Below, piece by piece: positions 13,899 through 53,086 of a stretch of 64,000 nucleotides of DNA (positions are counted from its first letter, which is position 1; the number at the start of each line of letters is the position of its first letter). Made by a program: the position numbers and the translations under genes. Origin of the DNA: Epithemia pelagica (Eukaryota > Protista > Bacillariophyta); assembly GCA_946965045.2 (NCBI GenBank), contig OX337236.1, positions 620,001-684,000 on the forward strand. Reading direction: 5' to 3'. A model generated the notes under the pieces. The model was not told the DNA's origin. It saw only the letters and a program-made list of their open reading frames with translations, and did no database searches.

Positions 13899-14335
13899 GA
13901 TTGGTTCTTTCTTCTTTGAATCGATCGAGATGGAACCAAAGAGAGAAACAATGACTTGAAGAATACTCGTAGTAGTTGTTGTTGTGTGCCAAACTCAAAA
14001 AGGTAACACCAGCACCACTGCAGAAGCTGTGTAAAGTGCGGTTGGCAGACAATGCCCCTCTCGGCAGGCTCGTCGTGGCGTTGGGTTTCGTATAGGTCTG
14101 ATGATTGGTTCGTGAATGGAGGTGATGGATGATAAGAAAGGACATTCGAAGGACGAGATCTCATCCTCCTGCACCATTTTGGGACCCATCAAACGACGAG
14201 AGAGGAGAAGAGAGGAGACAGAAACCCTACCCGGATATTTAAAAATTGATGTGAGAAAAAAGCGCCATGCCACTCGTGACCGATCTTGCGGGACTGACGT
14301 GTGATGGATGATGGATGTGGATATGGATGATGCAT

Positions 14336-14494
14336 TGTCTTGTTCCAGTCGATACCTTATCCAACGTGCAAATTAAAAGATATTATAAGGCTAAACCACT
14401 AATGTAAGGATCCCCAAAATAGTAACCATGTAAACGGTAAAACCCCCAAAGATTTCCCATATCCGGGTTTTGTTCCCACGACCCGAATAAGACA
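14336..14494 (-). repeat. 3' LTR of element A (159 bp)
   Basis: Base-for-base identical to 20666-20824 by eye; 6-bp inverted termini. Confidence 0.97.
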
Positions 14495-14525
14495 GTCCCC
14501 GCAAAGTGTAGCTCACCCCGAGAAT

Positions 14526-17500: not shown

Positions 17501-18680
17501 CACGATGGTTCTGCTTGCTCGTGCCCTTTTCGGCCCATTTGAGGTCAATTCGATGGAAGCGGCTTAATTTCGTGAACTGCGTGGCGGCCCCCGTTTGCTC
17601 GCCGGCCAAATCCGCCGTCAGACCATCCGGAACCCCAACTTCATCAATAAAACGGGCCAATGCTTGGCCGACATGTGCCTTGGAAGCGAGTGGGTAAACG
17701 GCCGTGTACTGTCCGTCCGTGAATACTTGCGCACATTTGTGTCCCGAAAGTGATGTCGTTCGAGCGAAAAGCGTATCCGTATAGAACCGACTATTCAATC
17801 TATTCCGATGCAATGCCAAGTTGTCAACACGATATCGTCGCGTTATAGGCGTGACAGCTGTCCGGATACCCTGTTGGGTGGTGACGCGGAGGGTTTTCCG
17901 CGCGGTTTCCAACCCAATCTTCCATTTCTTGCTGAGATTTTCCGGTGAAACGGTCGAGTGACGGTCCGAGCCGAGACCGCCGACCGATCTGAGACTGTCG
18001 AGTCGCTGCCCCACGGCCACAGGATCGCATGCGCTAGAGACCGCGCCAATTTCGAGTGAGATCTCTTCACGTGCATCATCTAGCGGGCTACGATTGTGTA
18101 AGCTCAAATCCACACTTTTTGGGTCCCATAACTCTTGACGCGTCAAAGTCACCGCAGGTAAAGTCTCAATTTCATGCTTGGTAGGCGCGCGGGACTCAAA
18201 GTAAATAGTCGTCCCCTGTATCTCAAAGGGAATATATAACCCGTCGGCCGTGATGCCAAATCCTTCGTCCTCCTTCCTTGTGGGGTCATCGCGAACCACA
18301 TGCCCACAATACCGAATTTGATTTTGATTCAAGAGAGTCTTCTTTAGTGCGCTACCAAACCACAACATTTGGTGGCCGATTAAGATGTATTCTACTCCTG
18401 TACTTTTCTCTCGGATGCATGTGTCACATGTCGCTATCGGTACGTATTGACCTCCTACCTGTTGTCCCATAAAGTCACTAACCTTGCATTCCATTCCTGT
18501 TGTTTCCATGAGTGTCCAATTGACACCAGCGCAGGAGGTGTCTGCCATTGTATCCATTTCGTTGCATGCAACATCATTCCCATTCCCAGTGCTGATTCCC
18601 ATGTTTCCTATGCTACAATCCACCGTCTTGTCAGTGGTCACCTCACGCCTGGCCCCACAAGTAACCACTGATGCCTGGCG
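14526..18680 (-). CDS. pol: Pol of element A (protease, integrase, chromo-like segment, RT, RNase H), open from the codon right after the gag UGA
   Basis: PR EMDTMADTSCAG; IN FYTDT..LTADLAGE..QNHRAERE; RT KARLVAGGH, LYGLK, YVDDIL; RH FVDADHAG, VETSSFGSEF. Confidence 0.95.
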   Translation of the reverse strand, partial: RQASVVTCGARREVTTDKTVDCSIGNMGISTGNGNDVACNEMDTMADTSCAGVNWTLMETTGMECKVSDFMGQQVGGQYVPIATCDTCIREKSTGVEYILIGHQMLWFGSALKKTLLNQNQIRYCGHVVRDDPTRKEDEGFGITADGLYIPFEIQGTTIYFESRAPTKHEIETLPAVTLTRQELWDPKSVDLSLHNRSPLDDAREEISLEIGAVSSACDPVAVGQRLDSLRSVGGLGSDRHSTVSPENLSKKWKIGLETARKTLRVTTQQGIRTAVTPITRRYRVDNLALHRNRLNSRFYTDTLFARTTSLSGHKCAQVFTDGQYTAVYPLASKAHVGQALARFIDEVGVPDGLTADLAGEQTGAATQFTKLSRFHRIDLKWAEKGTSKQNHRAEREIGLLKQRWHRRMVDCRVPRRLWDYGLVHESGVLSRVARGHDSRSGIERLTGETPDISEWIDFQFFDIVWYHDNTKADTSDEHRHLGFWLGIAHRIGSDLCYWILTKAGKVLARTTVQHVTEQEQAEPAITAKIQEFRLIVEQRLDDTNFVDWESKGPGFLEDVEEPVEDDTQVKGVIPTDEEYGKMIQEPKPEADDLGEEYDNYLGAQIQLDVGGETLLGTVVKRKKGLDGKPIGTRHKNPLFDSRAYDVSFPGGVIQEYTANVIAESLYSQLDDQGRQFAIMSEIIGHRKNGDAVGKDDGFIVSKNGNKVPRRTTKGWEIAIEWKDGSQSWIPLREAKDGYPIELAEYIVAQGLEQEPAFHWWVPRVMNHKRRIINKVVGKKKKQKKYWKLTHKYGVRLPHSVEEALQFDKETGTTFWRDAIAKELGVVKVAWEARDDLVLAEVRAGRQLIGYTEIKCHMVFDVKMDLTRKARLVAGGHMTDAPSSLTYSSVVSRDSIRIAFLIAALNDLDVLACDIGNAYLNAPCREKIWFLGGAEVGSEFQGKVCVMTRALYGLKSSGASWRATLVSTLYDMGYVDTKADPCVLRRERRRDNGEPYYELILVYVDDILLVSHKPEPVFEEIDRHYKIKKGSIGPPTTYLGAQVYQHNLPTGGTAWGMSSEKYVNNAIKVVEQLLLEDGDGKHLKTTARVPIETSYKPELDTSEELDDKMRARYQQLIGVLRWAVEIGRVDIYLEVSIMSQYLANPRKGHLEAVYCVFSFLKSHPKLKMVFDPVTVKLDESCFAQTPIEEWKEFYGDVAEEVPADMPTPLGNPVEITCFVDADHAGNVVTRRSHTGILVFLQNAPILWFSKRQNTVETSSFGSEFVAMRIAKELIVGMRYKLRMFGVPVVGPANILCDNRGVVKNTSIPSSILSKRHNAINYHSVREAAAAGIVRVGKEDTETNIADLFTKMLPQSRRNNLISQFTYSSAFGDRGPPSQPRGTTK

Positions 18681-18683
18681 TCA
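18631..18683 (-). promoter_or_regulatory. Putative gag-pol readthrough signal: UGA-C, 9-nt spacer, 11-bp stem-loop
   Basis: Minus-strand RNA: UGA CGCCAGGCA UCAGUGGUUAC (19-nt loop) GUGACCACUGA. Confidence 0.65.
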
Positions 18684-20609
18684 CTCATATGCGCCGGCTC
18701 CGAATCTGCGTCCGTTGGTGCTGCCACGGTCGTTGCTACCGGGATTCTCGGTTCCCGCCGCACTACCAGCGGCATGTCCATTGGTACCTCCGCCGACAGA
18801 CGGGTCTGTGATGACCGATGGTGGCTCATTATTCTCATTCACGTCGACATTGCCGATGCCGCGTCCACTGGCAGCAGAACCGCGCCCCCAATCACCACCG
18901 CGCCCCCAATCACCACGTCCCCGCCCGTAGCCACGGCCGCGGCCACCACCACGGCCGCCACGATCACCTGAGCTGCGGAGCCGAGCTCGTTCCTGATGGA
19001 TGTACGCCTGTCCGGCGGGCCCAAGAGTGGCCATCTCCTGGGAAGTGAATCGGCGGCTGACGTCCGTGACGTCAACGCCGTAGAAGGTGAAAATACCGTT
19101 GTGCTGTTGGAGACCCGCAAAATTCCGTGGACGGGAAGCGGGTGACTGTTCGCCCGTGTGTGTTTCCGAGATAAACCGGTGCCGAGTGCCAGGACGTGTG
19201 CCACTGCCTCCGATGACATTCGGGTACAGTTCCGAGACTTCACGCGAGATATAGGCGATGGCGTCATCTAAATTAGACCTGTAGTTGCTTCGCACGGTGC
19301 TTTTTATGACGGCAAACTCGGCCGTTGCAATTCGGATGTTGTCCAGCAAGATCTTGACCTGATTTGCATTCGAGCGTCGATTAGGTGTCTCTTCGAGCGT
19401 GCGGAATGCACGTAGAAGCTTGGTAGAATAGGCGTCGAAGCTAAACGCTCTCTCGTTATGATAAAATACGGAACTAAGGATAGCTTCAGCCTTGTTGATA
19501 CGTTTCTCTTTCTGGCCGCCGCCATTGTAGTGTGCTACCAAGGCTAACCATGCCGCTCGACCGTTCTGGGATGCCTGGTAGGGTTGAATCCACGTTGCGG
19601 GTTGGTCGCGTACACGGTCACTAAGCAACCGGTACACTGCCTTGTTGTCTTCGTGAAAGAATGGTCCAGTCAGAGGGTAAGTGTACAATTCTTGCTCTCG
19701 GAGAGTTTGAAAGACGTGTCCAGGTTGAATTTCAGGCCTAATTACATAGTCGAGTGGGGCTTGTTGCTTCCCAATTATGTGGGACAAATAGGTAGGGAAT
19801 TCGCGAGACCAATCTTCCCATATCTCTTCCTTGAGGATTTCGGGCTTAATTTCCGGTGCCTTGTCAGTTTCTGCTTTAATTTCCATCTCGTCGAGGGCAT
19901 CCGAGAGTACCACTTGGTCGAAGTCGGCAGCAGTGATGTCACGCCTCTGTCTACGGGCCTTGGAAGCCCAAAAACACAGCCCTTGAAGATTCTTTACGAC
20001 GCTTGTTGGAAGGCTTATATTGTTCGGTCCAGGGCGTTTCTCCAACCTTGAAGCTAAGGACGTGACATCATCCTTACTCATTCGTCCGAAGGCGTGTAAC
20101 GAATTAAGACGTTCTATGTTTTCTAGTACTTGAATTTCGTTTGCGTTTGCCCCGCACACGGTCAATACCAGCCCGACTTGCGAAAGCGCGGGTGGTGGTC
20201 CTGCAGGCGGGTGCGGTATCGGGGGAGGTGGTGCACCACCATCGCCATCATCGCCGTGTCCACCACCACCACCACCGCCTCCTCCAGCGCCGCCGTCTCC
20301 TCCAGCGCCGCCGTCTCCTCCGTCTCCGCCGCCAGCGGGTGCACCTCCAGCGGTTTCGCCCCGTGTCGACACGCTTCTTGTTCCTCTCGTTCCACTACTT
20401 GAACTCCCGGCTCTATTACTAGAGCCGCCAGTACTTCCACCAGTGCCACCACCACTGGGGTTCCGTTCCGTTCCTGTTTTCCTCGCGGGCATCTTTCTAC
20501 TACCCGTATCCGTACTGGCTCCCCCCGCTGGGACAGCGGTTCCCGTTCCTTGCCCTTCGGGGCTTGTTTCCGGTGGATTCTTCGCCGTAGCTCTAGTATT
20601 CGTTACCAT
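18681..20609 (-). CDS. gag: Gag of element A, 642 aa; Gly-rich N-terminus and RGG-rich C-terminus
   Basis: Located between PBS and pol; blocks PLDYVIR, NGRAAWLALVAHY, NQVKILLD. First ATG at 20609 (20624 is GTG). Confidence 0.9.
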   Translation of the reverse strand: MVTNTRATAKNPPETSPEGQGTGTAVPAGGASTDTGSRKMPARKTGTERNPSGGGTGGSTGGSSNRAGSSSSGTRGTRSVSTRGETAGGAPAGGGDGGDGGAGGDGGAGGGGGGGGGHGDDGDGGAPPPPIPHPPAGPPPALSQVGLVLTVCGANANEIQVLENIERLNSLHAFGRMSKDDVTSLASRLEKRPGPNNISLPTSVVKNLQGLCFWASKARRQRRDITAADFDQVVLSDALDEMEIKAETDKAPEIKPEILKEEIWEDWSREFPTYLSHIIGKQQAPLDYVIRPEIQPGHVFQTLREQELYTYPLTGPFFHEDNKAVYRLLSDRVRDQPATWIQPYQASQNGRAAWLALVAHYNGGGQKEKRINKAEAILSSVFYHNERAFSFDAYSTKLLRAFRTLEETPNRRSNANQVKILLDNIRIATAEFAVIKSTVRSNYRSNLDDAIAYISREVSELYPNVIGGSGTRPGTRHRFISETHTGEQSPASRPRNFAGLQQHNGIFTFYGVDVTDVSRRFTSQEMATLGPAGQAYIHQERARLRSSGDRGGRGGGRGRGYGRGRGDWGRGGDWGRGSAASGRGIGNVDVNENNEPPSVITDPSVGGGTNGHAAGSAAGTENPGSNDRGSTNGRRFGAGAYE

Positions 20610-20650
20610 ATTCCTGTAGTTCACTTCGTTTACTTCCTCTCAATACCGCA

Positions 20651-20665
20651 GTGGGTCTGATAAAC
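20651..20665 (-). promoter_or_regulatory. Putative primer-binding site of element A (GTTTATCAGACCCAC)
   Basis: Abuts the 5' LTR; its complement reads like a tRNA anticodon arm (UGGGU CUGAUAA AC). Confidence 0.5.
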
Positions 20666-20824
20666 TGTCTTGTTCCAGTCGATACCTTATCCAACGTGCA
20701 AATTAAAAGATATTATAAGGCTAAACCACTAATGTAAGGATCCCCAAAATAGTAACCATGTAAACGGTAAAACCCCCAAAGATTTCCCATATCCGGGTTT
20801 TGTTCCCACGACCCGAATAAGACA
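20666..20824 (-). repeat. 5' LTR of element A (159 bp)
   Basis: Identical to 14336-14494. Confidence 0.97.
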
Positions 20825-21023
20825 GCATGTGGATCTTTTTCTGTTAGGGTATCTTTGTTCTTGTCGGACCGATCACACATCAAACGTTTATCTTTTTGAA
20901 CCATGCATCTCGTCCAAGTATTGACTGTTACAAGTTGGTGAAGAAGCACACTAACTACCAGCAAGAGCTTGAAATTCATACGGAAAGCAAGAGATTCGAC
21001 TCTGCTGTCAGCACCGTGTCCAC

Positions 21024-33083: not shown

Positions 33084-36000
33084 ATGAGGGTGACGGCATT
33101 GGTGTCGTTGGTACAATGGTACATTGTGTCGTCCACGTGGGCAGCCGGTGGCGACGTGAATGCCCACTTGGCTTTGGCCGAAGACCCAGAGGCCTCGTTA
33201 GTGGACCACCAACAAGAGGACGACAAGGATGACAAGACGACCGCTGCGGACCAACCAGAATCGTTGTTGGAGGTGGGCCGTCGTCAATTGGACTGGATCC
33301 GATCCAAACCGAATGGCTTTGTCCATGAGCATTTTGACTTGCGACCCTACAATCCGGAGGATCCCAGTTCGCCCTTGGGCGTCTTTGCCGGCGCTGATTT
33401 GGCCAAGGGTGACTTGTTGTTTCGCGTGCCGCGCGAGTGTTTGATTGCCACCTACGACAATGATATTTGCGATACGGTGCAAGCCTTGGTGACGGAATTG
33501 GAATTGGGCAATGAATCGCGGTACGAACCCTACGTGTCTTATTTGCAACGACAAGCGCCGGGACAATTGCCCACGGCCTGGACCACGGCCGGTCAAGCCC
33601 TCTTGCAGTCCTTGTTGGGCGAGGGGGCCTTGCCACCCCGCGATGCCACGGCCGTCGACTGGGGCTGTCACAATGCCAATGATCCACCCCATGTCCAACA
33701 TGCGGCCATGTTGTTGATTCAACGGGGATGGGATGAATTGCTCATTCCCATTTATGACTTGTTGGGACATCGCAATGGCGAGTATTGGAGCAATACCAAC
33801 ATGGCACCGGGCGCTTCGGTACACGATCGGAGTCAACCAATCGAAGTGTTTGCCGCCCGCGATATTCGCCAGGGCGAAGAACTCTATGGTTCCTACGATC
33901 AATGCAATGATTGTGGCGGTCGGACCGATTCCTATGGCACGGCGGAAATTTTGCGCGATTATGGCTTTGTCGAAGACTATCCGCAAAAGTGGATCTTTCC
34001 CAAACAACGCATTTCCTTTTCGTTGGATTACACCTATACCAAGGACAGCAATGGGACAGTGGTGGAAATCCACACGGAGGATTTGCAACTGCATTGGCAT
34101 TCCGCTCCCCTCAAGGAACGTCATGTGCCCTTTTTTGCACAGCAAGTCGCACGCTTGATCGAATTTGGGCAAACAACCTTTTCGAGCCAAAACAAGCAGC
34201 ACGAATTGGGCATTCCGGATTTGGAATGGCGCTTGTTGGTTCAATATCATGCCGCACTCTTGACGGCCCTGCAAAAACTGGTCCAAGTCTCCTCGCCGAA
34301 ATCGAACCACGACAACAAAAAACCCAACACAACAAGTCCGGACCAGAGCCATAAGGATCGTCCTCACATGGTCGTTCCGAATCCTCGTCTCGAGTTGGAT
34401 CATGGACAACGTCAAGTGGACTGGGTCCGATCCATGGGGGGCTTTGTCAATAGCAAATTGGACATTCGACGAGCCAATCCCAACGATCCCACCTCCCCCT
34501 ACGGCGTCTATGCCACCCAAGAAATTGCCGCCCATGAACTGCTCCTGAGTATTCCCCGCGACTGCTTGATTACCAACCCCAATGACGATACCTGTGAATC
34601 CGTCGATATTTTGGCGCACGAATTTTACTTGGGTGACCACTCGCGCTTTGAACCCTACGTGACGTATCTGTTGGAAACCCAACCCTATGCCCAAGTCCCC
34701 GCCTTGTGGTCCCAACCCGCCAAACGATTGTTGCTTCGCATTGTCCTGGAAGGCAATATGGAGGATCTCGATGATGACGATTTGGATGACTTGATGGAGG
34801 AGGAGGATTTGCGCGTGGATTTGCCACCCCGACACTTGACGGATCCGGGATGGATTGGCTGTACCAAGTTTGAGGACCCCTCCACACCCCTGTTGCATCG
34901 CCATGCGGCCATGCTATCGCATCAACGAGGATGGGATGAAGTCATGATTCCCGTCTTTGATCTCATGAATCATCACAATGGACGTCAGTTTTTGAATACC
35001 CAGGAAAGTCATTCCATTCATGATACCAGCCAGGATGTGGAGGTGGAAACGACGCGCGTCATTGCGGCAGGAGAAGAATTGTATACCACCTACGATGGTT
35101 GTACCGATTGTGGCCGACGCACCTTTACCTATGGGACGGCCGAACTCTTTCGCGATTATGGCTTTGTCGAAGCCATGCCACAAAAATGGCTCTTTCCCCA
35201 ACACAAGATGCGCTTCACCTTGGATTACAAGTACGAACGTGACGGTTCCGTCCTGGACCCGAACGATTTGCAATTGCAATGGTTGGGCCGCGATCGTCCG
35301 GGACCCAATGCCCGCGAATTTTTGGAAGATCATGTCGAACGATTGCAAGACTTGCAAGCCACGGCATTGTCCTCCTTGGACTTGTATCCCACTCTGCCGC
35401 AATTTGAATGGGACTCCATTCGAGAATACCATGGCGCCTTGTTGACTGCTCTGAAAACGGCCCTTCAAGTTTTGGATCAAGAAGAACAAGCCGCTACCGG
35501 CGAAACCTGTCCCGATGGCAGCGATTCCTGTCAAGCGTCCGTGTCCAATGGCCGATACCATGCCTTGGACGAAATGTTTGACGACGAAGGTTACAATTCC
35601 TACGTGTGCAAGGTCGATTGGAGTTTTCCCACCTACGATCGCGTGGCGAAATGGAAATCGCAATATCAAAAAATCTTTTTTGTCGAAGACCCGCAAACGC
35701 ACGATGTCTGTTTTGAATTGGACAGTACCTATCAAATTTGTGGCTGTTATCGACCGCATTACCACGAAATGGGGACCCATTATCCCGCCAGTTTCTTGCC
35801 CCAACTCAAACGTGTCTTGTGGGTGGGTGGTGGAGATTCCATGTTGTTGCATGAAATTATCAAGTACAATCCCTCCTTGGAATTGGCCATTGGATTGGAA
35901 TTGGATCAAAAGGTAACGCGTGGTAGTTTCAAGTACTTTGGAACACAACCGCATTGGGACCGTCATGACAAGGTCCAGTGGTGGTATGGGGATGCGGCCA

Positions 36001-38024
36001 AGAGTCTCCTCATGCTCCCCAAGGAATGGTTTGGTACCTTTGACTTGGTCCTGGTCGATTTGAGTGAAACTGTCATGAGCAACTCGGTCACCAAGGAACT
36101 CGACATTATGGCCGCCCTTTCCTTGCTTCTCAAACCCGATGGTATCTTTATGAAGAATGAAATTTATTTTGATCATTTGCACGACCTGTTCAAGTACAGT
36201 ATGCATCTGCATGTGTACGATGTTCCCGTCTTGTGCTCGCAATCCTTCATCTTTGGAAGCAACTCGATTGACTTTATGAAACAAAAACTTACCAATCACG
36301 GAACCAAGGACAATCTTGTGTTCAAGCCCATTGACGAGCTTGACAATCGATACTTTGAAGTGCACGAGTATGGAATGAACCCGTATCCGGCTCGTCATTG
36401 TACCGATGAAGCCAATGAACCCGAACCCCAAGAACAAGAAAGCAGTCCGGGTATTCTCATGATCTTGGAAGCCGAGAACGTTGCATTCAAAGGTTTGGCG
36501 TCGATTAATAAAGTATCCAAGCTCGTGGAAAAGACATTAAAGAAGGATGGTCTTACCGTTGTTTCCTCCTTCACGTCCGAATCGGCAGCCACTGTAGTGT
36601 TGGAGGAAGGATATGTGATTGCCCGTACCTGGCCAGAGAATAATTATTGTGCCTTTGACCTTCACTTGTGGAGCAGCTTTGCCAAGATGGAAACCATCAA
36701 GAATTCCTTGATTGAAGCCATGGGCAGCAGTGGACCTCAGTCTTCGTCAGCCTTCCGTATCGTCGCAGGTGGTATGTATGGAATTGGCACATGGAAGAGT
36801 GACAGCACAAGCCGTGGACCCAAGTTGCCGCAATGCGAAAAGGTTGAAGAGGGCCCCCAACGGACCATTCCCATGGACGACAGTCTTGTCCGATCTGTGG
36901 TAAAGGAAAGTTTGGAGTTGGTCATGGAAGAAAATGTCGTGGCCACTGTTCTTTGTGGACCTGAGAGTAGCACCGGGTGTAGCAGCATTGAAGTTGCATC
37001 GCAGCATGCCAAGGTTGCCAAGGTTGTTCCTTTGTGGACCTGCGACGATATTGCGGGCGGAGTGGAGTTCCAACAAGACAGTGGCACTCGCAAGTTTGCT
37101 TGTGAAAAAGAAATGATCAAGACTCTCGAAGACATTGCGTCTGCCAAGAAAAATGTCGGTGTCGTGATTGTCGACCCAAGTACCGAATATGCCATGGCTC
37201 AAATTATGTACAAGATTGCGTCTCGCGGCAAGTACAAGAAAATGTTTTCCGACAACCTTTTGGTATTGGCTCCCATCCTGGACAGTGAACGTGATGGATG
37301 GCGTCGCGTCTTTGTGGACCATTTCCGTGAAATTTATCACCAAATGCCCCTGTTCCGCTCCGAGGTGCTGTACAATACCACTTCAAGTAGTTTGGAAATG
37401 GAAACATTTTTGGCTGGAGACGAGACGTTCATTCAACGTGTGAATGATGTCACCACCGCTGTGGAAGAAAGCACGGGCTTGGTTGGTGAGACCCGCATGT
37501 TTGAGGGTGGGCGTTTCCGTACGGTCAAGAACCCCAATCCCAAAGTGTTTGCTTTGCCAGGCGACTACGACCAAAGTGGCCCCTTTGAGCAGTGGACCAC
37601 TCAACAGGCCTTGGCACAACAGACTGTCTTCCAGTTTGAGGTATCCAAGGTAGAAGGAAAGGAATCGATCCAAACAATATTGGATTCGGTACTTGACAAG
37701 ATGGCGATTAAAACCAATGATGCTGCTCGCGGATTTATGGATATTGGTGATGGCTGTGTCGTCTTTAGTGAGCTAAAGGGAGGAAGTGTTGTCGTACTGT
37801 GGGATGGACAAGCCAACATTACCGTCAATCTTTTCCAATTCCAACAGGGCGCCGGATTCTTTACCAAATTCGCCGACGAGTTTGCCAAGACGTCCCCCTT
37901 TACGAAATTGATGCTCCGAGACGAAATGCCACGTGGCTATGGACGCGTGGTCAATTTCTCCCAGGATATTGGAGAACGTCTCGATCCCACCTGGTCCTTG
38001 AGTGTGGTCAAGAGCGTGAAGTAG
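33084..38024 (+). CDS. Secreted fusion of two LSMT-type SET domains, a spermidine-synthase-like aminopropyltransferase and degenerate AdoMetDC-like domain(s); putative long-chain polyamine synthase/methylase, 1646 aa
   Basis: Signal peptide; PIYDLLGH..ELYGSY..RDYGF and IPVFDLMNH..ELYTTY..RDYGF; KRVLWVGGGDS, ELDQKV, DLVLVDLSE; VVLEEGYVIARTWPENNYCAFDL. Confidence 0.88.
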   Translation: MRVTALVSLVQWYIVSSTWAAGGDVNAHLALAEDPEASLVDHQQEDDKDDKTTAADQPESLLEVGRRQLDWIRSKPNGFVHEHFDLRPYNPEDPSSPLGVFAGADLAKGDLLFRVPRECLIATYDNDICDTVQALVTELELGNESRYEPYVSYLQRQAPGQLPTAWTTAGQALLQSLLGEGALPPRDATAVDWGCHNANDPPHVQHAAMLLIQRGWDELLIPIYDLLGHRNGEYWSNTNMAPGASVHDRSQPIEVFAARDIRQGEELYGSYDQCNDCGGRTDSYGTAEILRDYGFVEDYPQKWIFPKQRISFSLDYTYTKDSNGTVVEIHTEDLQLHWHSAPLKERHVPFFAQQVARLIEFGQTTFSSQNKQHELGIPDLEWRLLVQYHAALLTALQKLVQVSSPKSNHDNKKPNTTSPDQSHKDRPHMVVPNPRLELDHGQRQVDWVRSMGGFVNSKLDIRRANPNDPTSPYGVYATQEIAAHELLLSIPRDCLITNPNDDTCESVDILAHEFYLGDHSRFEPYVTYLLETQPYAQVPALWSQPAKRLLLRIVLEGNMEDLDDDDLDDLMEEEDLRVDLPPRHLTDPGWIGCTKFEDPSTPLLHRHAAMLSHQRGWDEVMIPVFDLMNHHNGRQFLNTQESHSIHDTSQDVEVETTRVIAAGEELYTTYDGCTDCGRRTFTYGTAELFRDYGFVEAMPQKWLFPQHKMRFTLDYKYERDGSVLDPNDLQLQWLGRDRPGPNAREFLEDHVERLQDLQATALSSLDLYPTLPQFEWDSIREYHGALLTALKTALQVLDQEEQAATGETCPDGSDSCQASVSNGRYHALDEMFDDEGYNSYVCKVDWSFPTYDRVAKWKSQYQKIFFVEDPQTHDVCFELDSTYQICGCYRPHYHEMGTHYPASFLPQLKRVLWVGGGDSMLLHEIIKYNPSLELAIGLELDQKVTRGSFKYFGTQPHWDRHDKVQWWYGDAAKSLLMLPKEWFGTFDLVLVDLSETVMSNSVTKELDIMAALSLLLKPDGIFMKNEIYFDHLHDLFKYSMHLHVYDVPVLCSQSFIFGSNSIDFMKQKLTNHGTKDNLVFKPIDELDNRYFEVHEYGMNPYPARHCTDEANEPEPQEQESSPGILMILEAENVAFKGLASINKVSKLVEKTLKKDGLTVVSSFTSESAATVVLEEGYVIARTWPENNYCAFDLHLWSSFAKMETIKNSLIEAMGSSGPQSSSAFRIVAGGMYGIGTWKSDSTSRGPKLPQCEKVEEGPQRTIPMDDSLVRSVVKESLELVMEENVVATVLCGPESSTGCSSIEVASQHAKVAKVVPLWTCDDIAGGVEFQQDSGTRKFACEKEMIKTLEDIASAKKNVGVVIVDPSTEYAMAQIMYKIASRGKYKKMFSDNLLVLAPILDSERDGWRRVFVDHFREIYHQMPLFRSEVLYNTTSSSLEMETFLAGDETFIQRVNDVTTAVEESTGLVGETRMFEGGRFRTVKNPNPKVFALPGDYDQSGPFEQWTTQQALAQQTVFQFEVSKVEGKESIQTILDSVLDKMAIKTNDAARGFMDIGDGCVVFSELKGGSVVVLWDGQANITVNLFQFQQGAGFFTKFADEFAKTSPFTKLMLRDEMPRGYGRVVNFSQDIGERLDPTWSLSVVKSVK

Positions 38025-44995: not shown

Positions 44996-45283
44996 ATGAG
45001 ACGAGATACGGTATCCTACAACAAGCATCGGGGTCTCTACCAGTACTCATATCCTCGTGCCCCCACACCGTCCCACTGGACAGCCCGACTGTTTTCCTCG
45101 TCGTTCCATCCGTCATTCCAGTATCAGCAGCAGCCGCAGCAATATCGATTCCCTCGTCCAACAGCCAAGCAGAACTACCACCACAGCACTTGCGTACGGT
45201 TCTTTTCCAGCTCTTAAAACGTGTCCGCGTACGAAAAGGCAAGTCCTTTGGGTTGCTGGTTTTGATTTGGGCCGTGTACTATG
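44996..45283 (+). pseudogene. 5' part (signal anchor) of a GT90 gene cut by element B; start codon uncertain
   Basis: Frame LLKRVRVRKGKSFGLLVLIWAVYY continues into 51473 as GTVHSWVYRL once the element and one TSD copy are removed. The nearest ATG (44996) is in another frame; a 45011-45210 intron would restore it but is speculative. Confidence 0.6.
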
Positions 45284-45498
45284 TGTGAGGTTATGCGCGA
45301 TATCCCCGGGATCTCACCCAGGACTTTATGCTGACGCAATCTACTCTTCATCAGAGACTCCTCTTTCATGCAATACACAAGACTCATTTAGGAACGACCC
45401 ATCCATCGAAATTATCCGCGAATATTATTTCATACGATCAAATTAGGAATAACTAAAGTCATTAGTAAACTCACAATTTCGAAAACATACAGATCTCA
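45284..45498 (+). repeat. 5' LTR of element B (215 bp)
   Basis: Identical by eye to 51253-51467. Confidence 0.97.
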
Positions 45499-45511
45499 GG
45501 TTATGAGCCCA
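45499..45511 (+). promoter_or_regulatory. Primer-binding site GGTTATGAGCCCA, complementary to the anticodon arm of initiator tRNA-Met (half-tRNA priming)
   Basis: Complement is UGGG CUCAUAA CC, directly after the LTR CA; same type as Drosophila copia. Confidence 0.85.
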
Positions 45512-45632
45512 AGTGTATTGCTCTGTTTGAATGGCCGTTTGACTGAGTAACTACGCGTTAACCTCGTTTTTAAGTTGTCTTTGAAATTGCTAAGTTCTCA
45601 CCATTGTTACCACTCGGTTTCAAGCTCAAGCA

Positions 45633-46970
45633 ATGGATGCTGAAGCTGCTAACGCTTTGGCTCAAGCCATTCAGGCTCTCGCAGCTGCGATTCCTGGTCC
45701 TCCTCCCGCAGCGGCCGCTGCTCCCGACATGGTTTCCCCGTACGAGGGAGGCACACTTGACCTCACGTCTCGCACAGGCACTGGCTTGTTCCGCGCTGGA
45801 TGTGACCCGCTGGACAGCAAGTTCACCGGGAAAGTTGAAGATCTACATCTATTCCTAGCCGACCTACGTACTCGCGTTGAAACCTGCCATTGGAATTCGG
45901 CGACTCACGGAATTTTGGATGTTGCAGTTGGTGGTACGACCTTCAAGTTACTCGACGATTACGGAAAAGTGACCGAAGCTCAAGTTGAAGCTGCTCGTAT
46001 CACGCGCTCTACTGCGTCACACCGTACAAAACAAAACGCTCAAATGATGTACGAATGCCTCATGGCATCCATCACCGACGAAGCCAAGTCCGCCCTTGCA
46101 TCACGTGGTGACGTCGATTTCAATAATGATGGACCCAAGCTCTTCTACCACTTAGTGTCCGAGCTTTTCACTGCGACATTCTCCAACGCACAAGCTACGA
46201 GAGATAAATTGTCCGAGTTTCACCCACGACGCTTTAAGTACGACGTAACCCAAGTGAACAATTTCATCCGTTCAGCCATCAAGACCTTGAAGGCTGCCTC
46301 TGCGACTGGTGGATCTATTACCGATCAAGAAATCTTGTATTTCCAATTCAAGGCCTATAAGAAAATCAAGGCTCCTGCAGAATGGACGTCTCACATTTTG
46401 TTTTTGGAGGCCAAAGCGTCCAGCACTCCAACCTACGCTCCAGATACGCTCTACAACGAAGCGCAAGCCAAATACAACAACTTGGTGAATTCTGGACTCT
46501 GGAAACCGTCCGATAAAACACCAGAGGAGCAAACCTTGGCAATGGTTGCTCAACAATCCAACAAGTCGTCTTCTGGTACCAAGTCAAACAAGCGCAAAGC
46601 GGAATCCAAGACCTCAGACGGCGACAAAGATAAGAAACAGCCTCCTTTTGCTCATAAGGATGGCCAACTCGGTGATTCTAAAGAATGGAATGGGAAAACC
46701 TACTACTGGTGCCCAGCGAACCACAAATACTCCCATTGGCACACGCACAAGGTAGAGGATTGCAACACCTACAAAAAGATGAAAGCTGGAGGCAGTGGCA
46801 AAAAGAAGGAAGCACCTAAAAAGCAAATTGGTTCCGGTGTGGCTGCCGAAGTTGCTGTCGATGTGGACAAGCTCAAAAAGGGAATGGCCGCAATCCTTCC
46901 TGGTGGTGAGTTTGATACTGATGATTTGGCCGATGCTCTTGCAGCCATCATCAAGAATGGCAGTGAATGA
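45633..46970 (+). CDS. gag: Gag of element B, 445 aa
   Basis: ATG-TGA ORF after the PBS, with a C-terminal Cys/His cluster YWCPANHKYSHWHTHKVEDC. Confidence 0.9.
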   Translation: MDAEAANALAQAIQALAAAIPGPPPAAAAAPDMVSPYEGGTLDLTSRTGTGLFRAGCDPLDSKFTGKVEDLHLFLADLRTRVETCHWNSATHGILDVAVGGTTFKLLDDYGKVTEAQVEAARITRSTASHRTKQNAQMMYECLMASITDEAKSALASRGDVDFNNDGPKLFYHLVSELFTATFSNAQATRDKLSEFHPRRFKYDVTQVNNFIRSAIKTLKAASATGGSITDQEILYFQFKAYKKIKAPAEWTSHILFLEAKASSTPTYAPDTLYNEAQAKYNNLVNSGLWKPSDKTPEEQTLAMVAQQSNKSSSGTKSNKRKAESKTSDGDKDKKQPPFAHKDGQLGDSKEWNGKTYYWCPANHKYSHWHTHKVEDCNTYKKMKAGGSGKKKEAPKKQIGSGVAAEVAVDVDKLKKGMAAILPGGEFDTDDLADALAAIIKNGSE

Positions 46971-47058
46971 CTGCTACCCTCATGGGATGCATTCATGGCA
47001 TTTTGGCCGTTTGTTGTTTTTCTTACGATCAAAATGAGTATTGTCGCGTTCCATGAGG
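46968..47058 (+). promoter_or_regulatory. Putative gag-pol readthrough signal: UGA-CUG, 7-nt spacer, extended stem-loop
   Basis: 46978-46990 CCUCAUGGGAUGC pairs with 47046-47058 GCGUUCCAUGAGG (13 bp, 2 GU); inner helices AUUCAU/AUGAGU and UUUGGCCGU/ACGAUCAAA. Confidence 0.7.
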
Positions 47059-50000
47059 TTCTGTCATGGGTCAAGTGGATTGGGAAACTTTTCTCCGCTC
47101 GGACCAAACCATTCAAAGTCGCCAACAAGCCTTTTCGGCGTCGTCCGCCCCGAACTCGAATCCACAAATCAAGCGTGGGCCACCGTCTTCCAGTTGATAT
47201 CACCATCAAATTGCCCCGTATATTGTTATGTCTCGCGGTGCTACAAATTGACCAAAAGATTCGGTGGATTGTTGTAAATCAATTGCCGCAACCTGGCAAA
47301 ACCAAGTCCTTCCATTTCGCTGACATCGATTGTTGTATCGAAACATCACGAATTCGAGGGAGAACCAAAAAGAAGTCGTTCTTCCGCCAAGCTCAACAAC
47401 TGATATCCCTCTTCACCTTAAACAAAAATCTGTTAGTTGACTTGGCCATGAATGGAACGAATGTACAAGGCCAAGACGACAAACCTCGTACCTCCATATT
47501 CGATTCCGATGCCGACAAGTTCCTGATCGACTCAGGAGCGTCACACCATTTGTGGAAACAACGCAAAGCTTTCTCCTCCTATCGTTTGCTGACAAGAGAA
47601 GAAAGAAAACAAGAAGCATTGCTGGGAGTGAATGGCGAAACTGTCATGCCTCTTGGAATAGGCACAGTCCCCCTCAAGTTAGAAGACGATCTCAACGACA
47701 TCCATGTTATCGAATTAAGAGATGTACGGCACTTACCTTCTGCCCCACTCAATATCATGGTCCCACAAGTCTTTGTGCGCCAGCGTCGCGAGGAAGGAGA
47801 CACTCGTGCTCGATGCTCCATCGACGATTCATGCATTGAGTTAGAATGGTTGAGTACAAAGGATCAAGTGGTGAGCAAATACGTACCACTCAACAAGAAC
47901 AACGTCGGTATGTGTTTTACCGCCCCTGGTTTTCGTCATTTCCGTGCCTTCATGGCTCTGGCAATGCCTGCCAATCAGATCTCAGACTCAGAAGACGAAG
48001 ATGATCCTGAGCGTCCGCCTCCTGATCCTCCGCCCGACGATGAAAATAAAGAGCCACAGCCGATCCATCCAATCCGGTCGCCACCATCCGAGGGAGTGAC
48101 CACCGATTTCACCACGGATCCAAATGTCCTGCCACCCATAGTGGAAGACGAACCATTATTGCGCTCAGACCAAGACCTCCTGATGCAATATCACGAGCGA
48201 TTGGGTCATTGCTCTTTTCAACAACTGAAACAATTGGCAGAAAAAGGCGTGATCCCAAAACGGTTAGCAAAGGTTGCGCCTCCCAAATGCCCCAGCTGCC
48301 TTTATGGGAAAGCGCACAAGAAACCTTGGCGCACTCACAAGGTGGATCCAAAGATTCGCACATCAACTGTCCCTGGCGCAGTCGTGAGTATGGACCAGTT
48401 GGAATCCCCAGTCCCTGGTCTCGTACCAATAGGAAAGGGTCAACCAACCAAGAAACGATTCAAAGGAGCAACGGTGTTTGTTGACCATGCCTCCGATTTG
48501 ACTTACGTGCATTTAATGCACGGCCTTACCACCGAAGAAACCTTGGAAGCAAAACACGAGTTCGAAAGATTCGCGCAACGGCATGGTGTTACCGTCCAGC
48601 ATTATCATTGTGACAATGGACGATTCGCAGATAAGGAGTTTATCAACGATGTCAAAAACGCACTCCAAACAATTTCTTTCTGTGGCGTGGGAGCCCACCA
48701 CCAGAATGGGATCGCGGAAAGGCGAATTCGCGACCTCACCGAAAGCGCGAGAACGATGATTCTTCATGCTGCTCACAGATGGCCGAAAACCATCACAGCA
48801 AACTTGTGGCCACAAGCGGTAAAGCATGCGACGAACATTCGCAATGCACTCCCACGCAACAACAAAACAAAATCTCCCATCTCCATCTTTTCAAACTCTG
48901 ATGTGGAACCAAACACTAAACACTTCCATCCTTTTGGTTGCCCCGTTTATGTGCTCCAAGCTCCACTCCAGACAGGAAGCCCTCACCCCAAATGGGCAGA
49001 ACGATCTCGAGTCGGTGTATTGTTGTGTCACTCGCCCCATCATGCTGCTTCTGTTCCTCTCATCTTGTCTACGCAAACTGGGCTCGTAAGCCCACAGTTC
49101 CATTGCGTGTATGACGACAAATTCGAGACGGTGAAGAACGAACAACATGATACAAGCATTTGGAAGCAAAAGGCGTTAGTGCACAAAGGAGATGAAAATA
49201 GATCTGACCATCTGATCTCGCGTCCCTTGCCACGACGATCACGCACACAGCAACAACAACGACAACAAGAATCCAACTTACCCAACTTTGGGAACAACAT
49301 CCCTCAAGCCTTGCTCGAATTACCCGATCTCTTGACGGGTACAATTTCGCAAATACCTGCTGACGATTCAGCTCCTCTTCCTGATACTGAACCCGAGCCA
49401 CAGATAGCTCCTGTTCCTCCAGAAGAGACTCCACAACCATACCCAGTGGACATTGCCCCCACAGGGCAAACAAGGACCGGTCGACAAGTGCGTCCTCCTT
49501 CCCGATTGTCGTTGATTGCGTACCATTGTTGTTTCATGGCTCAGGATGTGGCCAAGACTTTGGCCGACTATCATCCTTTGGCACTGCTGCAGATGATGAG
49601 CACCGCCGCCATCAAGCCCGATGTTATGCCCTTGCATATCGCTCTCCAACAAGAAGATTGCGATAAGTTCATCCAGGCCATGGTGAAGGAACTCAAGCAG
49701 CACGCCGAATTGAAGCATTGGAAGATTGTGCATAAGGCTCAAGTTCCGCCCAACGCAAAACCAATCCCCATGGTTTGGTCGTTTATGCGCAAAAAGGACC
49801 CAGCTGGAGCAATCATCAAATGGAAAGCTCGCCTCTGTGCTGGAGGCCACAAACAGGTTTTTGGTGACACCTACTGGTCCACCTTTTCCCCTGTTGTTGC
49901 ATGGCCAACCGTCCGGTGCATCTTCATCCTGGCGTTGATTTTGGGATGGGACATGCGATCAATCGACTTCATTATGGCATATACTCAAGCCAAGGTGAAG

Positions 50001-51257
50001 ACAGACATCTTCATGCAATTGCCAAAAGGTACAACCTTGCCTGGTCTTGACCCGAATAAACACTTGTTGAAACTCCAACAAAACTTGTATGGCTTGAAAG
50101 ACGGCCAAGTGACTTGGCATGAGCATATAAAGGATGGACTCCTCAAGCAAGGATTCAAACAATCCAACGTTGATCCCTGTCTCTTCACAAAGGGCGTCGT
50201 TCTTCTCGTCCTGTATATTGACGACGCAGCCTTCTTCTCTCCGGATCCGAAAGCCATCGACCAAGAAGTAGCACTGCTTCAAAAGTCCTTTGACCTAACA
50301 GATGATGGGCCACTGTTGGACTATCTTGGAGCTCGATTCATTCGACACGAAGATGGGCGCGTTGAATTGCAACAACAGAAGTCAATCGACAACTGCTTGA
50401 ATCATCTTGGTCTGGGCCTCTCTCAAGAAAATGTCAAAATGCATGACACTCCAGCCGAAGCCAATAAGATCCTACACGCGGATTCTGATGGCCCCACTCG
50501 GAAGCAAGACTGGAACTACCGTGCTGTGATTGGTTCCCTCAATTATCTTCAAGCTATGTCCCGCCCGGATCTATCCTATGCTGTACATCAATGTGCTAGG
50601 TTCTGTAACGATCCTAAGCTATCCCATGAGGTTGCAGTCAAACGAATTTGCCGCTATCTACGTGCGACCCGTGATAAAGGTCTGTTTTTCCGACCGAATG
50701 TTCGCGAAGGATTCAAGTGCTACGTGGATGCTGATTGGGCTGGTAATTGGAACAAAAACAGGCCCAACGACCCTGCTGGTGCGCTCTCGCGCACAGGCTA
50801 CGTTATTATGTACGCCGGTTGTCCGTTGGTATGGGGATCCAAGATGCAATCATTGGTAGCGCTTAGCACAACCGAAGCAGAGATTATTGCCCTCTCAACA
50901 GCCCTACGCGAAGTCATTCATCTCCAGAATCTCTTAGAAGAATTACGTGACTCTGGATTTCCTATTCCCTTCTCCAAGGCACAAGTTCAATGTCGCACTT
51001 TCGAAGACAACGCTGCTTGTATAGAAGTTGCTACGTCAGAGCCTAAGATTCGACCACGAACCAAGCATCTTGCCGTCCGTCTTTTTCACTTCCGCAGTCA
51101 TGTTGAAAATGGGCGTATTGCCATCGAACATGTGCCCTCCCAGGACCAATTGGCTGATATCTTTACCAAACCATTACCTCGGGATTCGTTTCGCCGTTTA
51201 CGGGATCGATTGCTTAATTGGTCTCCCGATCCGATTCCGCAGCACGAGGGAGTGTGA
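46971..51257 (+). CDS. pol: Pol of element B (PR-IN-RT-RH), in frame with gag from the codon after the UGA; first ATG at 46995
   Basis: FLIDSGASHH; HERLGH..CPSC; DQLES, DNGRF, QNGIAERRIR; KARLCAGGH, LYGLKD, YIDD; YVDADWAG, ALSTTEAE. The stop lies inside the 3' LTR. Confidence 0.96.
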   Translation: MLPSWDAFMAFWPFVVFLTIKMSIVAFHEVLSWVKWIGKLFSARTKPFKVANKPFRRRPPRTRIHKSSVGHRLPVDITIKLPRILLCLAVLQIDQKIRWIVVNQLPQPGKTKSFHFADIDCCIETSRIRGRTKKKSFFRQAQQLISLFTLNKNLLVDLAMNGTNVQGQDDKPRTSIFDSDADKFLIDSGASHHLWKQRKAFSSYRLLTREERKQEALLGVNGETVMPLGIGTVPLKLEDDLNDIHVIELRDVRHLPSAPLNIMVPQVFVRQRREEGDTRARCSIDDSCIELEWLSTKDQVVSKYVPLNKNNVGMCFTAPGFRHFRAFMALAMPANQISDSEDEDDPERPPPDPPPDDENKEPQPIHPIRSPPSEGVTTDFTTDPNVLPPIVEDEPLLRSDQDLLMQYHERLGHCSFQQLKQLAEKGVIPKRLAKVAPPKCPSCLYGKAHKKPWRTHKVDPKIRTSTVPGAVVSMDQLESPVPGLVPIGKGQPTKKRFKGATVFVDHASDLTYVHLMHGLTTEETLEAKHEFERFAQRHGVTVQHYHCDNGRFADKEFINDVKNALQTISFCGVGAHHQNGIAERRIRDLTESARTMILHAAHRWPKTITANLWPQAVKHATNIRNALPRNNKTKSPISIFSNSDVEPNTKHFHPFGCPVYVLQAPLQTGSPHPKWAERSRVGVLLCHSPHHAASVPLILSTQTGLVSPQFHCVYDDKFETVKNEQHDTSIWKQKALVHKGDENRSDHLISRPLPRRSRTQQQQRQQESNLPNFGNNIPQALLELPDLLTGTISQIPADDSAPLPDTEPEPQIAPVPPEETPQPYPVDIAPTGQTRTGRQVRPPSRLSLIAYHCCFMAQDVAKTLADYHPLALLQMMSTAAIKPDVMPLHIALQQEDCDKFIQAMVKELKQHAELKHWKIVHKAQVPPNAKPIPMVWSFMRKKDPAGAIIKWKARLCAGGHKQVFGDTYWSTFSPVVAWPTVRCIFILALILGWDMRSIDFIMAYTQAKVKTDIFMQLPKGTTLPGLDPNKHLLKLQQNLYGLKDGQVTWHEHIKDGLLKQGFKQSNVDPCLFTKGVVLLVLYIDDAAFFSPDPKAIDQEVALLQKSFDLTDDGPLLDYLGARFIRHEDGRVELQQQKSIDNCLNHLGLGLSQENVKMHDTPAEANKILHADSDGPTRKQDWNYRAVIGSLNYLQAMSRPDLSYAVHQCARFCNDPKLSHEVAVKRICRYLRATRDKGLFFRPNVREGFKCYVDADWAGNWNKNRPNDPAGALSRTGYVIMYAGCPLVWGSKMQSLVALSTTEAEIIALSTALREVIHLQNLLEELRDSGFPIPFSKAQVQCRTFEDNAACIEVATSEPKIRPRTKHLAVRLFHFRSHVENGRIAIEHVPSQDQLADIFTKPLPRDSFRRLRDRLLNWSPDPIPQHEGV

Positions 51258-51467
51258 GGTTATGCGCGATATCCCCGGGATCTCACCCAGGACTTTATGC
51301 TGACGCAATCTACTCTTCATCAGAGACTCCTCTTTCATGCAATACACAAGACTCATTTAGGAACGACCCATCCATCGAAATTATCCGCGAATATTATTTC
51401 ATACGATCAAATTAGGAATAACTAAAGTCATTAGTAAACTCACAATTTCGAAAACATACAGATCTCA
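51253..51467 (+). repeat. 3' LTR of element B (215 bp)
   Basis: Identical to 45284-45498. Confidence 0.97.
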
Positions 51468-53086
51468 CTATGGGACCGTTCACTCCTGGGTGTACCGTTT
51501 GTATTCCAGTTCAAGCAGCAGCAGCAGTGCCGAGACCGAGCATACTGTCCCTTTTCCCACAGCCGGAGACCTTTTTCTTTTGGACAGTTTGGCACACAAT
51601 CGATCGCAACGGTTTTCCTCTGTAGAAGAACGAGTTCGTGTCTACATGGGAGACTGGTATTGGCCACCCTGTCACCCCCACGACGATACCGTGGGATATG
51701 CCTATTCCGACGAGACACTCGAGGATGGAACCACCACGACAAGGACGACAAGTACTGTAGTATCATTGACACGACAACGATTTCACCATAGAAACAACGC
51801 AAGTGCACCGTTTTTTCGTCTCGTGGTACAGTCCAATCCAGCCTCGCGACAAGTCTTTTTGGCCCAACGACAGGACTTTGTGGGAACGGATGGGAGTAAC
51901 AATTCATTGGTCTGTACGCAACGCTTTCCAAACGACAAGCGCATTCAACGAGAATGTTCCGATGTCCAATCCTCCGTACCGGCACCCTTCCTGTATTCGG
52001 CAGTTCAGGACCACAACAACAACAACACGAGGATGAGTCGACAGGTTCCCATTTTGTTTCGATTTGGGGATCGTTCAGCCTATCAAACCATGCCCACCTT
52101 TCAAAAATGGCGACCCGTAACACTATCCGACACTGCTGCTGCTGCTGCTGCTGCTGCTGCAAGTGACGACAATAAGACACTGTGTCGAGCCCATGGTTCC
52201 AATCCTCCTACTGCTACTACGATTCCGAAAGCAAACGAGGAGGATGGTGTTGTATTGTTGCCACCCATTGTCTGGCGATTGAATTGGGCTCGTCATTTTG
52301 GTGCCATTGCCACGCTTTCTCATCACGATATTCCCTGGAACGCCAAACGCAACCAAGCCGTCTTTCGTGGCATCTTGTCCGGTTGGGGGGACGGCCCACC
52401 AACTACACATATCAATCCGCTCGCTCAGTGTCACGTTTATCCACGATGTCACTTGGTCTGGTTGTACCACAATTCGACTCTGGTCAATGCCAAATGAACG
52501 GGCATTCCCAAGAATCGAATCCAACCCTCCATCCACGGCGTGTCCTTGGTGGGTGACAAATTGTCCTTGGCACAACTCTTGCAATACAAAATGATTGTCT
52601 TTTTGGAAGGCAATGGTACGCACGCACACCGGAAAACCCGGCACTCTGCAATGCGGAGGGACCAAGTTGTTTTGGAATGCGTGGAGGGGCATGCTCATAG
52701 TACCTGGCGTTCTTCTCTCTCTTGTGTGTGTTTGTTGTTGTTGTTCGTTTCTTGTGTGTTTGCGTAGATTTGTCTTCTGGTGAAAGTGGGGATTGGTCTC
52801 GCGAAGTGTCGTCCTCATGCCTCCACCCACCAAATTGGGATGGGCCATGGAACACTTGCTGCAACCCTACGTGCATTATGTCCCCATTTGGGCCAATTGT
52901 TCCAATGTCGAACAACAAGTCCAATGGGTTTTGGATCATGACGACCAGGCCCAAGCCATTGCCCATCAAGGATCCCTGTGGATTCAAGACTTGGTCCTTC
53001 ATCCGCAGGCCGCCGCGGACGATCAAGCCATTTTTCGACTCGTGTTGCAACGCTATGCCCGGCATTTTCGGGCCACCGAACAATAA
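51468..53086 (+). pseudogene. GT90 (CAP10/KDELC-like) glycosyltransferase relic, 3' part; intron 52616-52767, nonsense TGA 52495-52497, frameshift near 52783
   Basis: FSSVEERVRVYMGDWY; AVFRG; LLQYKMIVFLEGN|D; SRSVVLMPPP..WAMEHLLQPYVHYVP. Confidence 0.85.

Follow-up and report, generated by a model that had tools for sequence, protein, structure and literature searches.

How an LTR (long terminal repeat) retrotransposon makes Pol when a stop codon stands between gag and pol is the question raised by Element B, which occupies positions 45284-51467 of the forward strand in a stretch of 64,000 nucleotides (nt) from the raphid pennate diatom Epithemia pelagica (contig OX337236.1, positions 620,001 to 684,000; hereafter the window). 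Intact and recently inserted, Element B belongs to the Ty1/copia type: its LTRs have TG...CA ends, it is flanked by a target-site duplication, and its pol follows the order protease (PR), integrase (IN), reverse transcriptase (RT) and RNase H (RH), including an RVT_2 domain. Besides RVT_2, domain searches identified Pol_BBD in the protease region, gag_pre-integrs and an integrase SH3-like domain in pol, while the gag product had no Pfam match. The gag open reading frame (ORF; 45633-46970 including the stop codon) and the ORF reaching 51257 share a common frame with a single stop between them, so that gag, one UGA and pol are all read in one frame. The letters across the junction are GGC AGT GAA TGA CTG CTA CCC TCA TGG, and both sequence and coordinates are exactly those given in the first-pass annotation of this DNA, which had proposed that the UGA is read through. 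As argued below, programmed readthrough of this UGA, leading to a Gag-Pol fusion protein, is probably the correct answer.

Conservation of the UGA codon at the gag-pol junction

Among ten genomic copies of the Element B family, which are 87-100% identical, TGA is kept in all and is followed by C in nine copies and by T in one. Copies of two further groups, the family of Element A, a second Copia element of the window, and a large clade referred to as the CAA clade, were collected by a pattern search with NNN at the stop position; TGA was found in 10/10 copies of the former and in 41/41 copies of the latter, with neither a sense codon nor another stop. The first-pass annotation had named a sense codon as the family consensus as an observation that would speak against readthrough, but TGA is present in all 61 copies checked (10 of B, 10 of A and 41 of the CAA clade). 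A search of the genome with the PR-IN protein of Element B gave 118 matches. In every intact family inspected in this genome, TGA bounds pol upstream and the gag gene, which starts from ATG and encodes 412-510 amino acids (aa), lies in the same open frame. The junction contexts are GAA TGA CTC (family L020), GAA TGA CAG (L034), TCC TGA CGG TTA (L060), GAG TGA CGC (Element A) and GAR TGA CAA CNA RAC CCG (CAA clade).

Relatives of pol, which are 37-67% identical, turned up on ten contigs, drawn from marine metagenomes and from other assemblies (sources: ENA including Tara, JGI, Logan and one NCBI assembly). These contigs represent eight families, all of which have the arrangement gag-TGA-pol in one frame. 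A profile built from 14 families was too diverse for a metagenome scan; a narrower profile yielded ten loci, three of which were informative and added the families L075, L076 and L078. The junction of L076 reads GAA TGA CTG CTA, exactly as in Element B. Altogether, gag, UGA and pol lie in one frame in 21 of 24 related families (18 examined first and three added later), whose protein identity to Element B is 25-67%. The stop codon of gag is UGA in 18/18 families, while the stop codons at the end of pol in the same elements are TGA in four, TAA in four and TAG in two cases. In the tree, the terminal branches among the UGA families mostly have lengths of 0.1-2.2 changes per site. A single transition is enough to convert UGA to UAA, yet UGA has been kept across deep branches, which argues that this codon is held by selection across lineages. 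Its presence in all copies and in the related families also indicates that the stop codon at the junction is not an artefact of decay.

The nucleotides around the stop codon are less uniform. The codon preceding UGA is GAR in 14/18 families, and C is found at position +4 in 14/18 families; since C also follows 6/10 of the pol-end stop codons, +4 C is weakly discriminating. The first-pass annotation had described +4 C as a shared feature, which is correct for the UGA-CUG of Element B and for nine of the ten copies of its family, but only for part of the families. Known leaky motifs are found among the junctions, namely CUA, CGG, CAA-CCA and CAA-UUA. The type I hexanucleotide of tobamoviruses, CAR-YYA, is absent from Element B, which has CUG-CUA instead; CAA-CCA and CAA-CUA occur in other families of this genome, and CAA-UUA occurs in L064. 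Some relatives have a different arrangement: in the marine Copia families L071 (1767-1815) and L072 (2016-2121), gag and pol overlap in the -1 frame and no in-frame UGA is present, and a slippery heptamer, G_GGA_AAC, lies directly before the gag TAG of L071. In the tree, this pair adjoins the clade that holds Element B and stands among UGA families. In the family L073, the ORF is fused into one and has a CCHC knuckle. The proposal of a general strategy in diatom Copia elements thus has to be narrowed: the arrangement is widespread in the Copia elements of this diatom and on marine contigs, but two families with a -1 overlap and one with a fused ORF depart from it.

A conserved RNA structure downstream of the UGA codon

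According to RNAfold, the sequence downstream of the UGA of Element B forms an extended stem-loop. Its basal helix of 13 base pairs (bp; 11 Watson-Crick and two G-U pairs) starts 7 nt after the stop codon and encloses 55 nt, which hold two further helices; helix, spacing and interior are all as the first-pass annotation had drawn them. The stem-loop has a minimum free energy of -35.5 kcal/mol (z = -3.8), and none of 200 shuffled sequences folded equally well. An uninterrupted helix of at least 13 bp at this position was obtained in 5/300 shuffles. The junction is also the most stable of 136 windows of 100 nt within Element B (empirical p = 0.007). When the junctions of 18 families were compared with control windows of the same element, the junction was more stable (Fisher p = 3e-7); p was below 0.05 in 8/18 families, and z was below 0 in 16/18. 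The 5' arm begins 7-9 nt past the stop codon in B, L020, L061, L065, L076, the CAA clade, L034 and Element A. Elements A and B were originally proposed to share stop identity, +4 C, frame and stem spacing; UGA, the common frame, +4 C and a 13-bp helix are found in both, with a spacer of 9 nt in A and of 7 nt in B.

The pairing itself is conserved between families. The 5' arm lies on the same codons in B, L020, L061 and L065 (positions 11-23 counted from the U of UGA), and the 3' arm falls in a homologous peptide (IVAFHE / IVAYHG / IVIYHG), so that the register of the helix is established independently of the fold. Across these four families, 50/52 cells of the basal helix pair, compared with 13-31/52 when the partner strand is slid by 1-3 nt, and 8/13 positions of the helix show changes on both sides with pairing kept. 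A hairpin of L076 also begins at position 11. This covariation was determined by counting pairs in a register fixed by the codon alignment. RNAalifold, applied to a simple MAFFT alignment of the junctions of the B clade, returned no structure, as that alignment misplaces the 3' arm of L061 across loops of differing length. The CAA clade has another design, consisting of three tandem hairpins, the first of which starts 9 nt after the stop codon. Here, 85% of the cells pair, compared with 32-52% in slid registers, and 15 compensatory cells were counted as opposed to 7.1 +/- 1.9 in shuffles, with 0/500 shuffles reaching 15. Stem covariation, which had been suggested as a check of the readthrough proposal, is thus present in both clades.

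Coding constraint downstream of the UGA codon

Frame openness, the first methionine and hydrophobicity were scored in 15 of the 18 families. The 360 nt following the UGA contain no stop codon in frame 0 and 1-12 in each other frame. The first in-frame methionine is located anywhere from aa 8 to none within 90 residues, without a conserved position. Within the B family, 34, 26 and 76 variable sites fall on codon positions 1, 2 and 3, respectively, between 47121 and 47540, and this excess at third positions, which marks frame 0 as coding, is clear from about 47120 onward. The basic motif found at the start of this region (KPFRRRPPR in B) is common in frame to L020, L061, L064 and L068. Between 46905 and 47120, third-position variability in the B family is only 0.08, compared with 0.21 in gag (p = 0.009) and 0.46 downstream (p = 1e-10), but the copies look mosaic and the baseline is uneven; the low value is therefore supportive only.

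Probable programmed readthrough and alternative explanations

What was observed is the anatomy of the junction and its conservation, a covarying stem and coding constraint downstream; from this we infer the occurrence of readthrough, its efficiency and its stimulation by the stem. The full-length RNA of Element B would be translated to Gag, ending at UGA 46968-46970. On a minority of ribosomes, a near-cognate tRNA would decode the UGA and translation would go on in frame, thereby producing a Gag-Pol fusion, and the rarity of this event would result in a high ratio of Gag to Pol. The leaky context, with GAA (Glu) before and C after the UGA, may confer basal leakiness, and the 13-bp stem, which would be located at the mRNA entrance of the ribosome while the UGA is in the A site, may raise readthrough above this level, an effect that extended stem-loops have in alphaviruses, furoviruses and tobraviruses. 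Programmed UGA readthrough is the best reading of the locus, and a probable one. Several points weigh against it. The only sequencing runs in which Element B was found are apparently genomic DNA assemblies, with contigs of up to 0.5 Mb. Because the families share ancestry, the family counts do not represent independent events. Mosaic or recombinant copies may account for part of the low variation at the junction, and gag, too, varies less than PR-IN. L063 and L064 are UGA families without notable downstream structure, and Element A has a weak overall folding z-score (-0.7 to -0.9). An in-frame AUG that could serve as a downstream start is present 9-10 codons past the stop codon in B, L020 and L061. 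Tca2 (pCal) of Candida albicans is the only gag-UGA-pol Copia element that has been tested, and a yeast reporter that contained just its junction showed no readthrough (PMC2194720), so that a non-canonical bypass of the stop codon may be at work.

Pol could also be produced without any decoding of the UGA, either by reinitiation or internal initiation at a downstream AUG (46995 in Element B) or from a separate transcript that starts at an internal promoter. The downstream AUG codons of B, L020 and L061 are what the former route would need, and the Tca2 junction, which gave no readthrough in yeast, contains a minor promoter; in Tca2, however, the Pol protein followed the LTR promoter and not the junction promoter (PMC2194720). 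Neither route requires a shared frame or a stop-free spacer, yet 21/21 UGA families are in frame, and past the stop codon only frame 0 stays open in the 15 families scored. The position of the first in-frame methionine varies as described above, and selection specific for UGA would have no role, which makes production of Pol without decoding unlikely. Termination-reinitiation was rejected, as there is no conserved start at or next to the stop codon and the first in-frame methionine ranges from aa 8 to beyond 90; a coupled restart at the AUG within GAAUGA would be out of frame, and this AUG is absent in families in which GAG precedes the stop codon. In Drosophila copia and plant Copia elements, the Gag:Pol ratio is set by splicing, and the copy in the window contains a GTGAGT-like donor at 46909 (GGTGAGT at 46908-46914), by which the stop codon could be removed from a pol mRNA. 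This donor is not kept in the B family, since the T of its GT reads C in 7/10 copies (GCGAGT / GCAAGT), and GTGAGT at 46909 was therefore rejected as a splice donor. An intron need not stay open or in frame, yet the stretch past the stop codon does so in the 15 families and is under frame-0 coding constraint, and splicing is very unlikely. Frame and openness are kept although reinitiation, an internal promoter and splicing need neither, which argues against all three.

A different view accepts readthrough but assigns another role to the stem-loop: UGA-C might be leaky enough by itself, and the structure could serve packaging, dimerisation or pausing for folding. L063 and L064 would fit this view, as they have the UGA without notable structure, and L064 carries CAA-UUA, a type of motif that acts without structure in tobamoviruses. 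The structures also differ by clade, with one long stem in some families and three tandem hairpins in others. On the other hand, the spacing of 7-9 nt between stop codon and 5' arm matches that of experimentally proven stimulators (PMC3159437). The additional stability is, moreover, localised to the junction, and a structure that does not stimulate readthrough is thus considered rather unlikely. Selenoproteins occur in diatoms, and the fact that only UGA is used, with a stem-loop just downstream, could point to the insertion of selenocysteine. When the whole of Element B was scanned with Rfam at a permissive threshold (E up to 5), no match to a selenocysteine insertion sequence (SECIS) was obtained, with the limit that Rfam models may miss diatom SECIS; furthermore, the 3' untranslated region comprises less than 215 nt of LTR, and UGA is also the stop codon at the end of pol in B, L061, L070 and A. 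Decoding as selenocysteine is therefore extremely unlikely.

Further features of the elements and of the window

The coordinates of the features of Elements A and B are listed in Table 1. The stop codon of Element B pol (GTG TGA) sits in the first bases of the 3' LTR, so that the coding sequence enters the LTR.

Table 1. Features of Element B and Element A, with positions in the window
Feature	Position	Strand	Remarks
Element B			
Target-site duplication CTATG	45279-45283 (5' copy); 51468-51472 (3' copy)	+	
5' LTR, TG...CA	45284-45498	+	100% identical to 3' LTR
gag ORF	45633-46967	+	445 aa; C-terminal motif GEFDTDDLADALAAI...E common to related families
Recoding context GAA UGA CUG	46965-46973	+	UGA at 46968-46970; -1 codon Glu; +4 = C
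Spacer between stop codon and stem	46971-46977	+	7 nt
Extended stem-loop (predicted)	46978-47058	+	Basal 13-bp helix 46978-46990 / 47046-47058, plus 2 bp 46991-46992 / 47043-47044
Inner helices of the stem-loop (predicted)	46999-47006 / 47029-47036; 47008-47010 / 47025-47027	+	
First in-frame AUG past the stop codon	46995-46997	+	Within the stem-loop; start codon in a rival explanation
Most hydrophobic 19-aa stretch of pol	46989-47045	+	Kyte-Doolittle mean 1.90; coded within the stem-loop
Basic motif KPFRRRPPR	47127-47153	+	First clear protein-level conservation past the stop codon; frame 0 in relatives
pol ORF	46971-51257	+	1428 aa from the codon after UGA; order PR, IN, RT, RNase H; ends in TGA 51255-51257
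3' LTR	51253-51467	+	
Element A			
Very divergent Copia element	14328-20825	-	168-nt LTRs, 98% identical
In-frame GAG UGA CGC	18681-18683	-	13-bp helix 18659-18671 / 18631-18643 after a 9-nt spacer

The first approximately 60 residues past the UGA always hold a transmembrane-like segment in the 15 families scored, with a Kyte-Doolittle maximum over 19 aa of 1.73-2.36, which exceeds that of every other part of gag and pol that was scored (<=1.55). In several families, a basic motif of the RRRPPR type then follows the hydrophobic segment. The segment would be carried only by the readthrough product. It is conceivable, though improbable, that readthrough adds a membrane anchor or a protease pro-region that is specific for Gag-Pol, and that its efficiency tracks the state of the host, for instance temperature or nutrient stress. 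Readthrough of the alphavirus opal codon is tied to such host states, and diatom Copia elements are known to be activated by stress; in this scenario, stress activation would be coupled to translation. The suggestion in the first-pass annotation that readthrough is tunable by the host found no support.

The copies of the B family have a mosaic appearance: when 45633-48180 was compared with the copies L002-L007, third-position variability was 0.21 in gag and 0.41-0.55 in the spacer and PR region, which suggests recombination between sublineages. In one copy, located on contig 6 (G000:C6:1617732-1618564), a 271-nt piece of the spacer and protease region, corresponding to 47485-47755 of the window, is present three times in tandem and accordingly gave three neighbouring matches in the search with the PR-IN protein. 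Three sequencing runs of one study, apparently of genomic DNA, contain Element B; in these, family variants, a joint that goes back by 271 nt and the LTR junction were seen, but no splice joint, an absence that in genomic DNA has no bearing on the RNA. Compared with L068, L067 (JGI 3300060725) apparently shows the same element in circular permutation on one contig, with gag downstream of pol. Such an order would fit an element that is circular or present in tandem, or an assembly that ran through an LTR.

The family of Element A comprises at least seven copies, which are 99-100% identical across 701 nt of the junction region; judging from this identity, the family looks recently active. The pol of Element A is extremely divergent from that of the other families and has a very long branch in the tree. 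The window as a whole represents gene-dense nuclear DNA of the diatom, in which no tRNA genes were found. It encodes a phosphoenolpyruvate carboxylase with 79% identity to the enzyme of Epithemia clementina, and all named relatives are from diatoms. It also contains an ORF of 1646 aa (33084-38024, forward strand), which encodes an unusual fusion of SET, spermine/spermidine-synthase and S-adenosylmethionine-decarboxylase domains.

Comparison with known systems

The Gag:Pol ratio is set in different ways in retroelements. Splicing serves this purpose in the Copia elements of plants and Drosophila, a +1 frameshift does so in Ty1, and murine leukaemia virus depends on readthrough of a UAG between gag and pol, which is followed by G and by a compact pseudoknot located 8 nt downstream. 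If confirmed, the Copia elements of diatoms and other marine Copia elements would set this ratio by readthrough of an in-frame UGA. As in murine leukaemia virus, an in-frame stop codon with a downstream structure is proposed to determine the ratio of Gag to Gag-Pol; unlike in the virus, the stop codon is UGA, mostly followed by C, and the structures are stem-loops. An assignment to the gammaretrovirus type, defined by UAG-G and a compact H-type pseudoknot, fails on stop identity, since the stop codon of gag is UGA in 18/18 families. The approximately 20 naturally diverged, covarying cassettes, which include a long stem, tandem hairpins and CAA-YYA without structure, could be useful for the study of eukaryotic readthrough beyond animals, fungi and plants, and they could serve for low-level expression in diatom engineering. 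For annotation, such elements should neither be split nor discarded as broken. The general picture of recoding is unchanged.

The closest structural parallel is provided by RNA viruses. The readthrough signals of alphaviruses and of furo-, tobra- and pecluviruses consist of UGA-C, a spacer of 7-8 nt and a basal stem of 12 or more bp around a variable loop (PMC3159437), and the stem stimulates readthrough 3-14-fold in alphaviruses (Firth et al. 2011, PMC3159437). Element B likewise has a stable stem of at least about 12 bp, located 7-8 nt after the stop codon, and resembles the viral UGA-C(UA/GG) type in the C following the UGA, the spacer, the large and poorly conserved loop and the overall length of about 90-140 nt (PMC3159437). 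Compensatory substitutions are a further common feature, and synonymous variation may likewise be reduced, although the copies of the Element B family look mosaic and give an uneven baseline. In contrast to the viruses, the host is the nuclear genome of a diatom, the element is an LTR retrotransposon, and the product of the predicted signal would be Gag-Pol rather than a replicase or a coat extension.

The core of the junction has been found in fungi. The fission-yeast Ty3/gypsy elements Tj1, Tcry1 and Tosmo1-3 have an in-frame TGA in a strictly conserved GAA-TGA-CT(A/G) context; the authors invoke the effects of AA before the stop codon and of C at +4, and they cite the stop codon of Tj1 as essential (10.1101/2022.12.06.519325). 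GAA-TGA-CT is likewise present in B, L076, L020, L061 and L065. These elements, however, belong to Ty1/copia instead of Ty3/gypsy and reside in a host of another kingdom, and the fission-yeast paper describes no downstream structure. Tca2 of C. albicans resembles the elements described here in belonging to the Copia superfamily, in its in-frame gag-UGA-pol arrangement and in a predicted 3' structure, but this structure is a predicted pseudoknot, the mechanism has been called non-canonical, and Tca2 is a single family as opposed to the radiation found here (PMC2194720).

For the Copia elements of two diatoms, Phaeodactylum tricornutum and Thalassiosira pseudonana, which are known as CoDi, Maumus et al. 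(2009, PMC2806351) reported "one or no stop codon/frameshift between gag and pol". Like these, Element B is a diatom Ty1/copia element with an ORF1 (gag) and an ORF2 (pol). The CoDi study did not analyse which stop codon is used, its frame and context or any RNA structure, and it proposes no readthrough (PMC2806351); our literature search found no paper on stop identity, frame or structure, or proposing readthrough, in diatom elements. The first-pass annotation had regarded the strategy as undescribed, which goes too far: a stop codon had already been recorded in CoDi elements (PMC2806351), and both GAA-UGA-CU(A/G) (10.1101/2022.12.06.519325) and a gag-UGA-pol Copia element (PMC2194720) were known. 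Readthrough between gag and pol, the combination of UGA-C with a stem-loop and the GAA-UGA-CU core are thus each known from other systems, and the new contribution, as judged by sequence comparison, is their documentation across a whole group of diatom and marine Copia elements.

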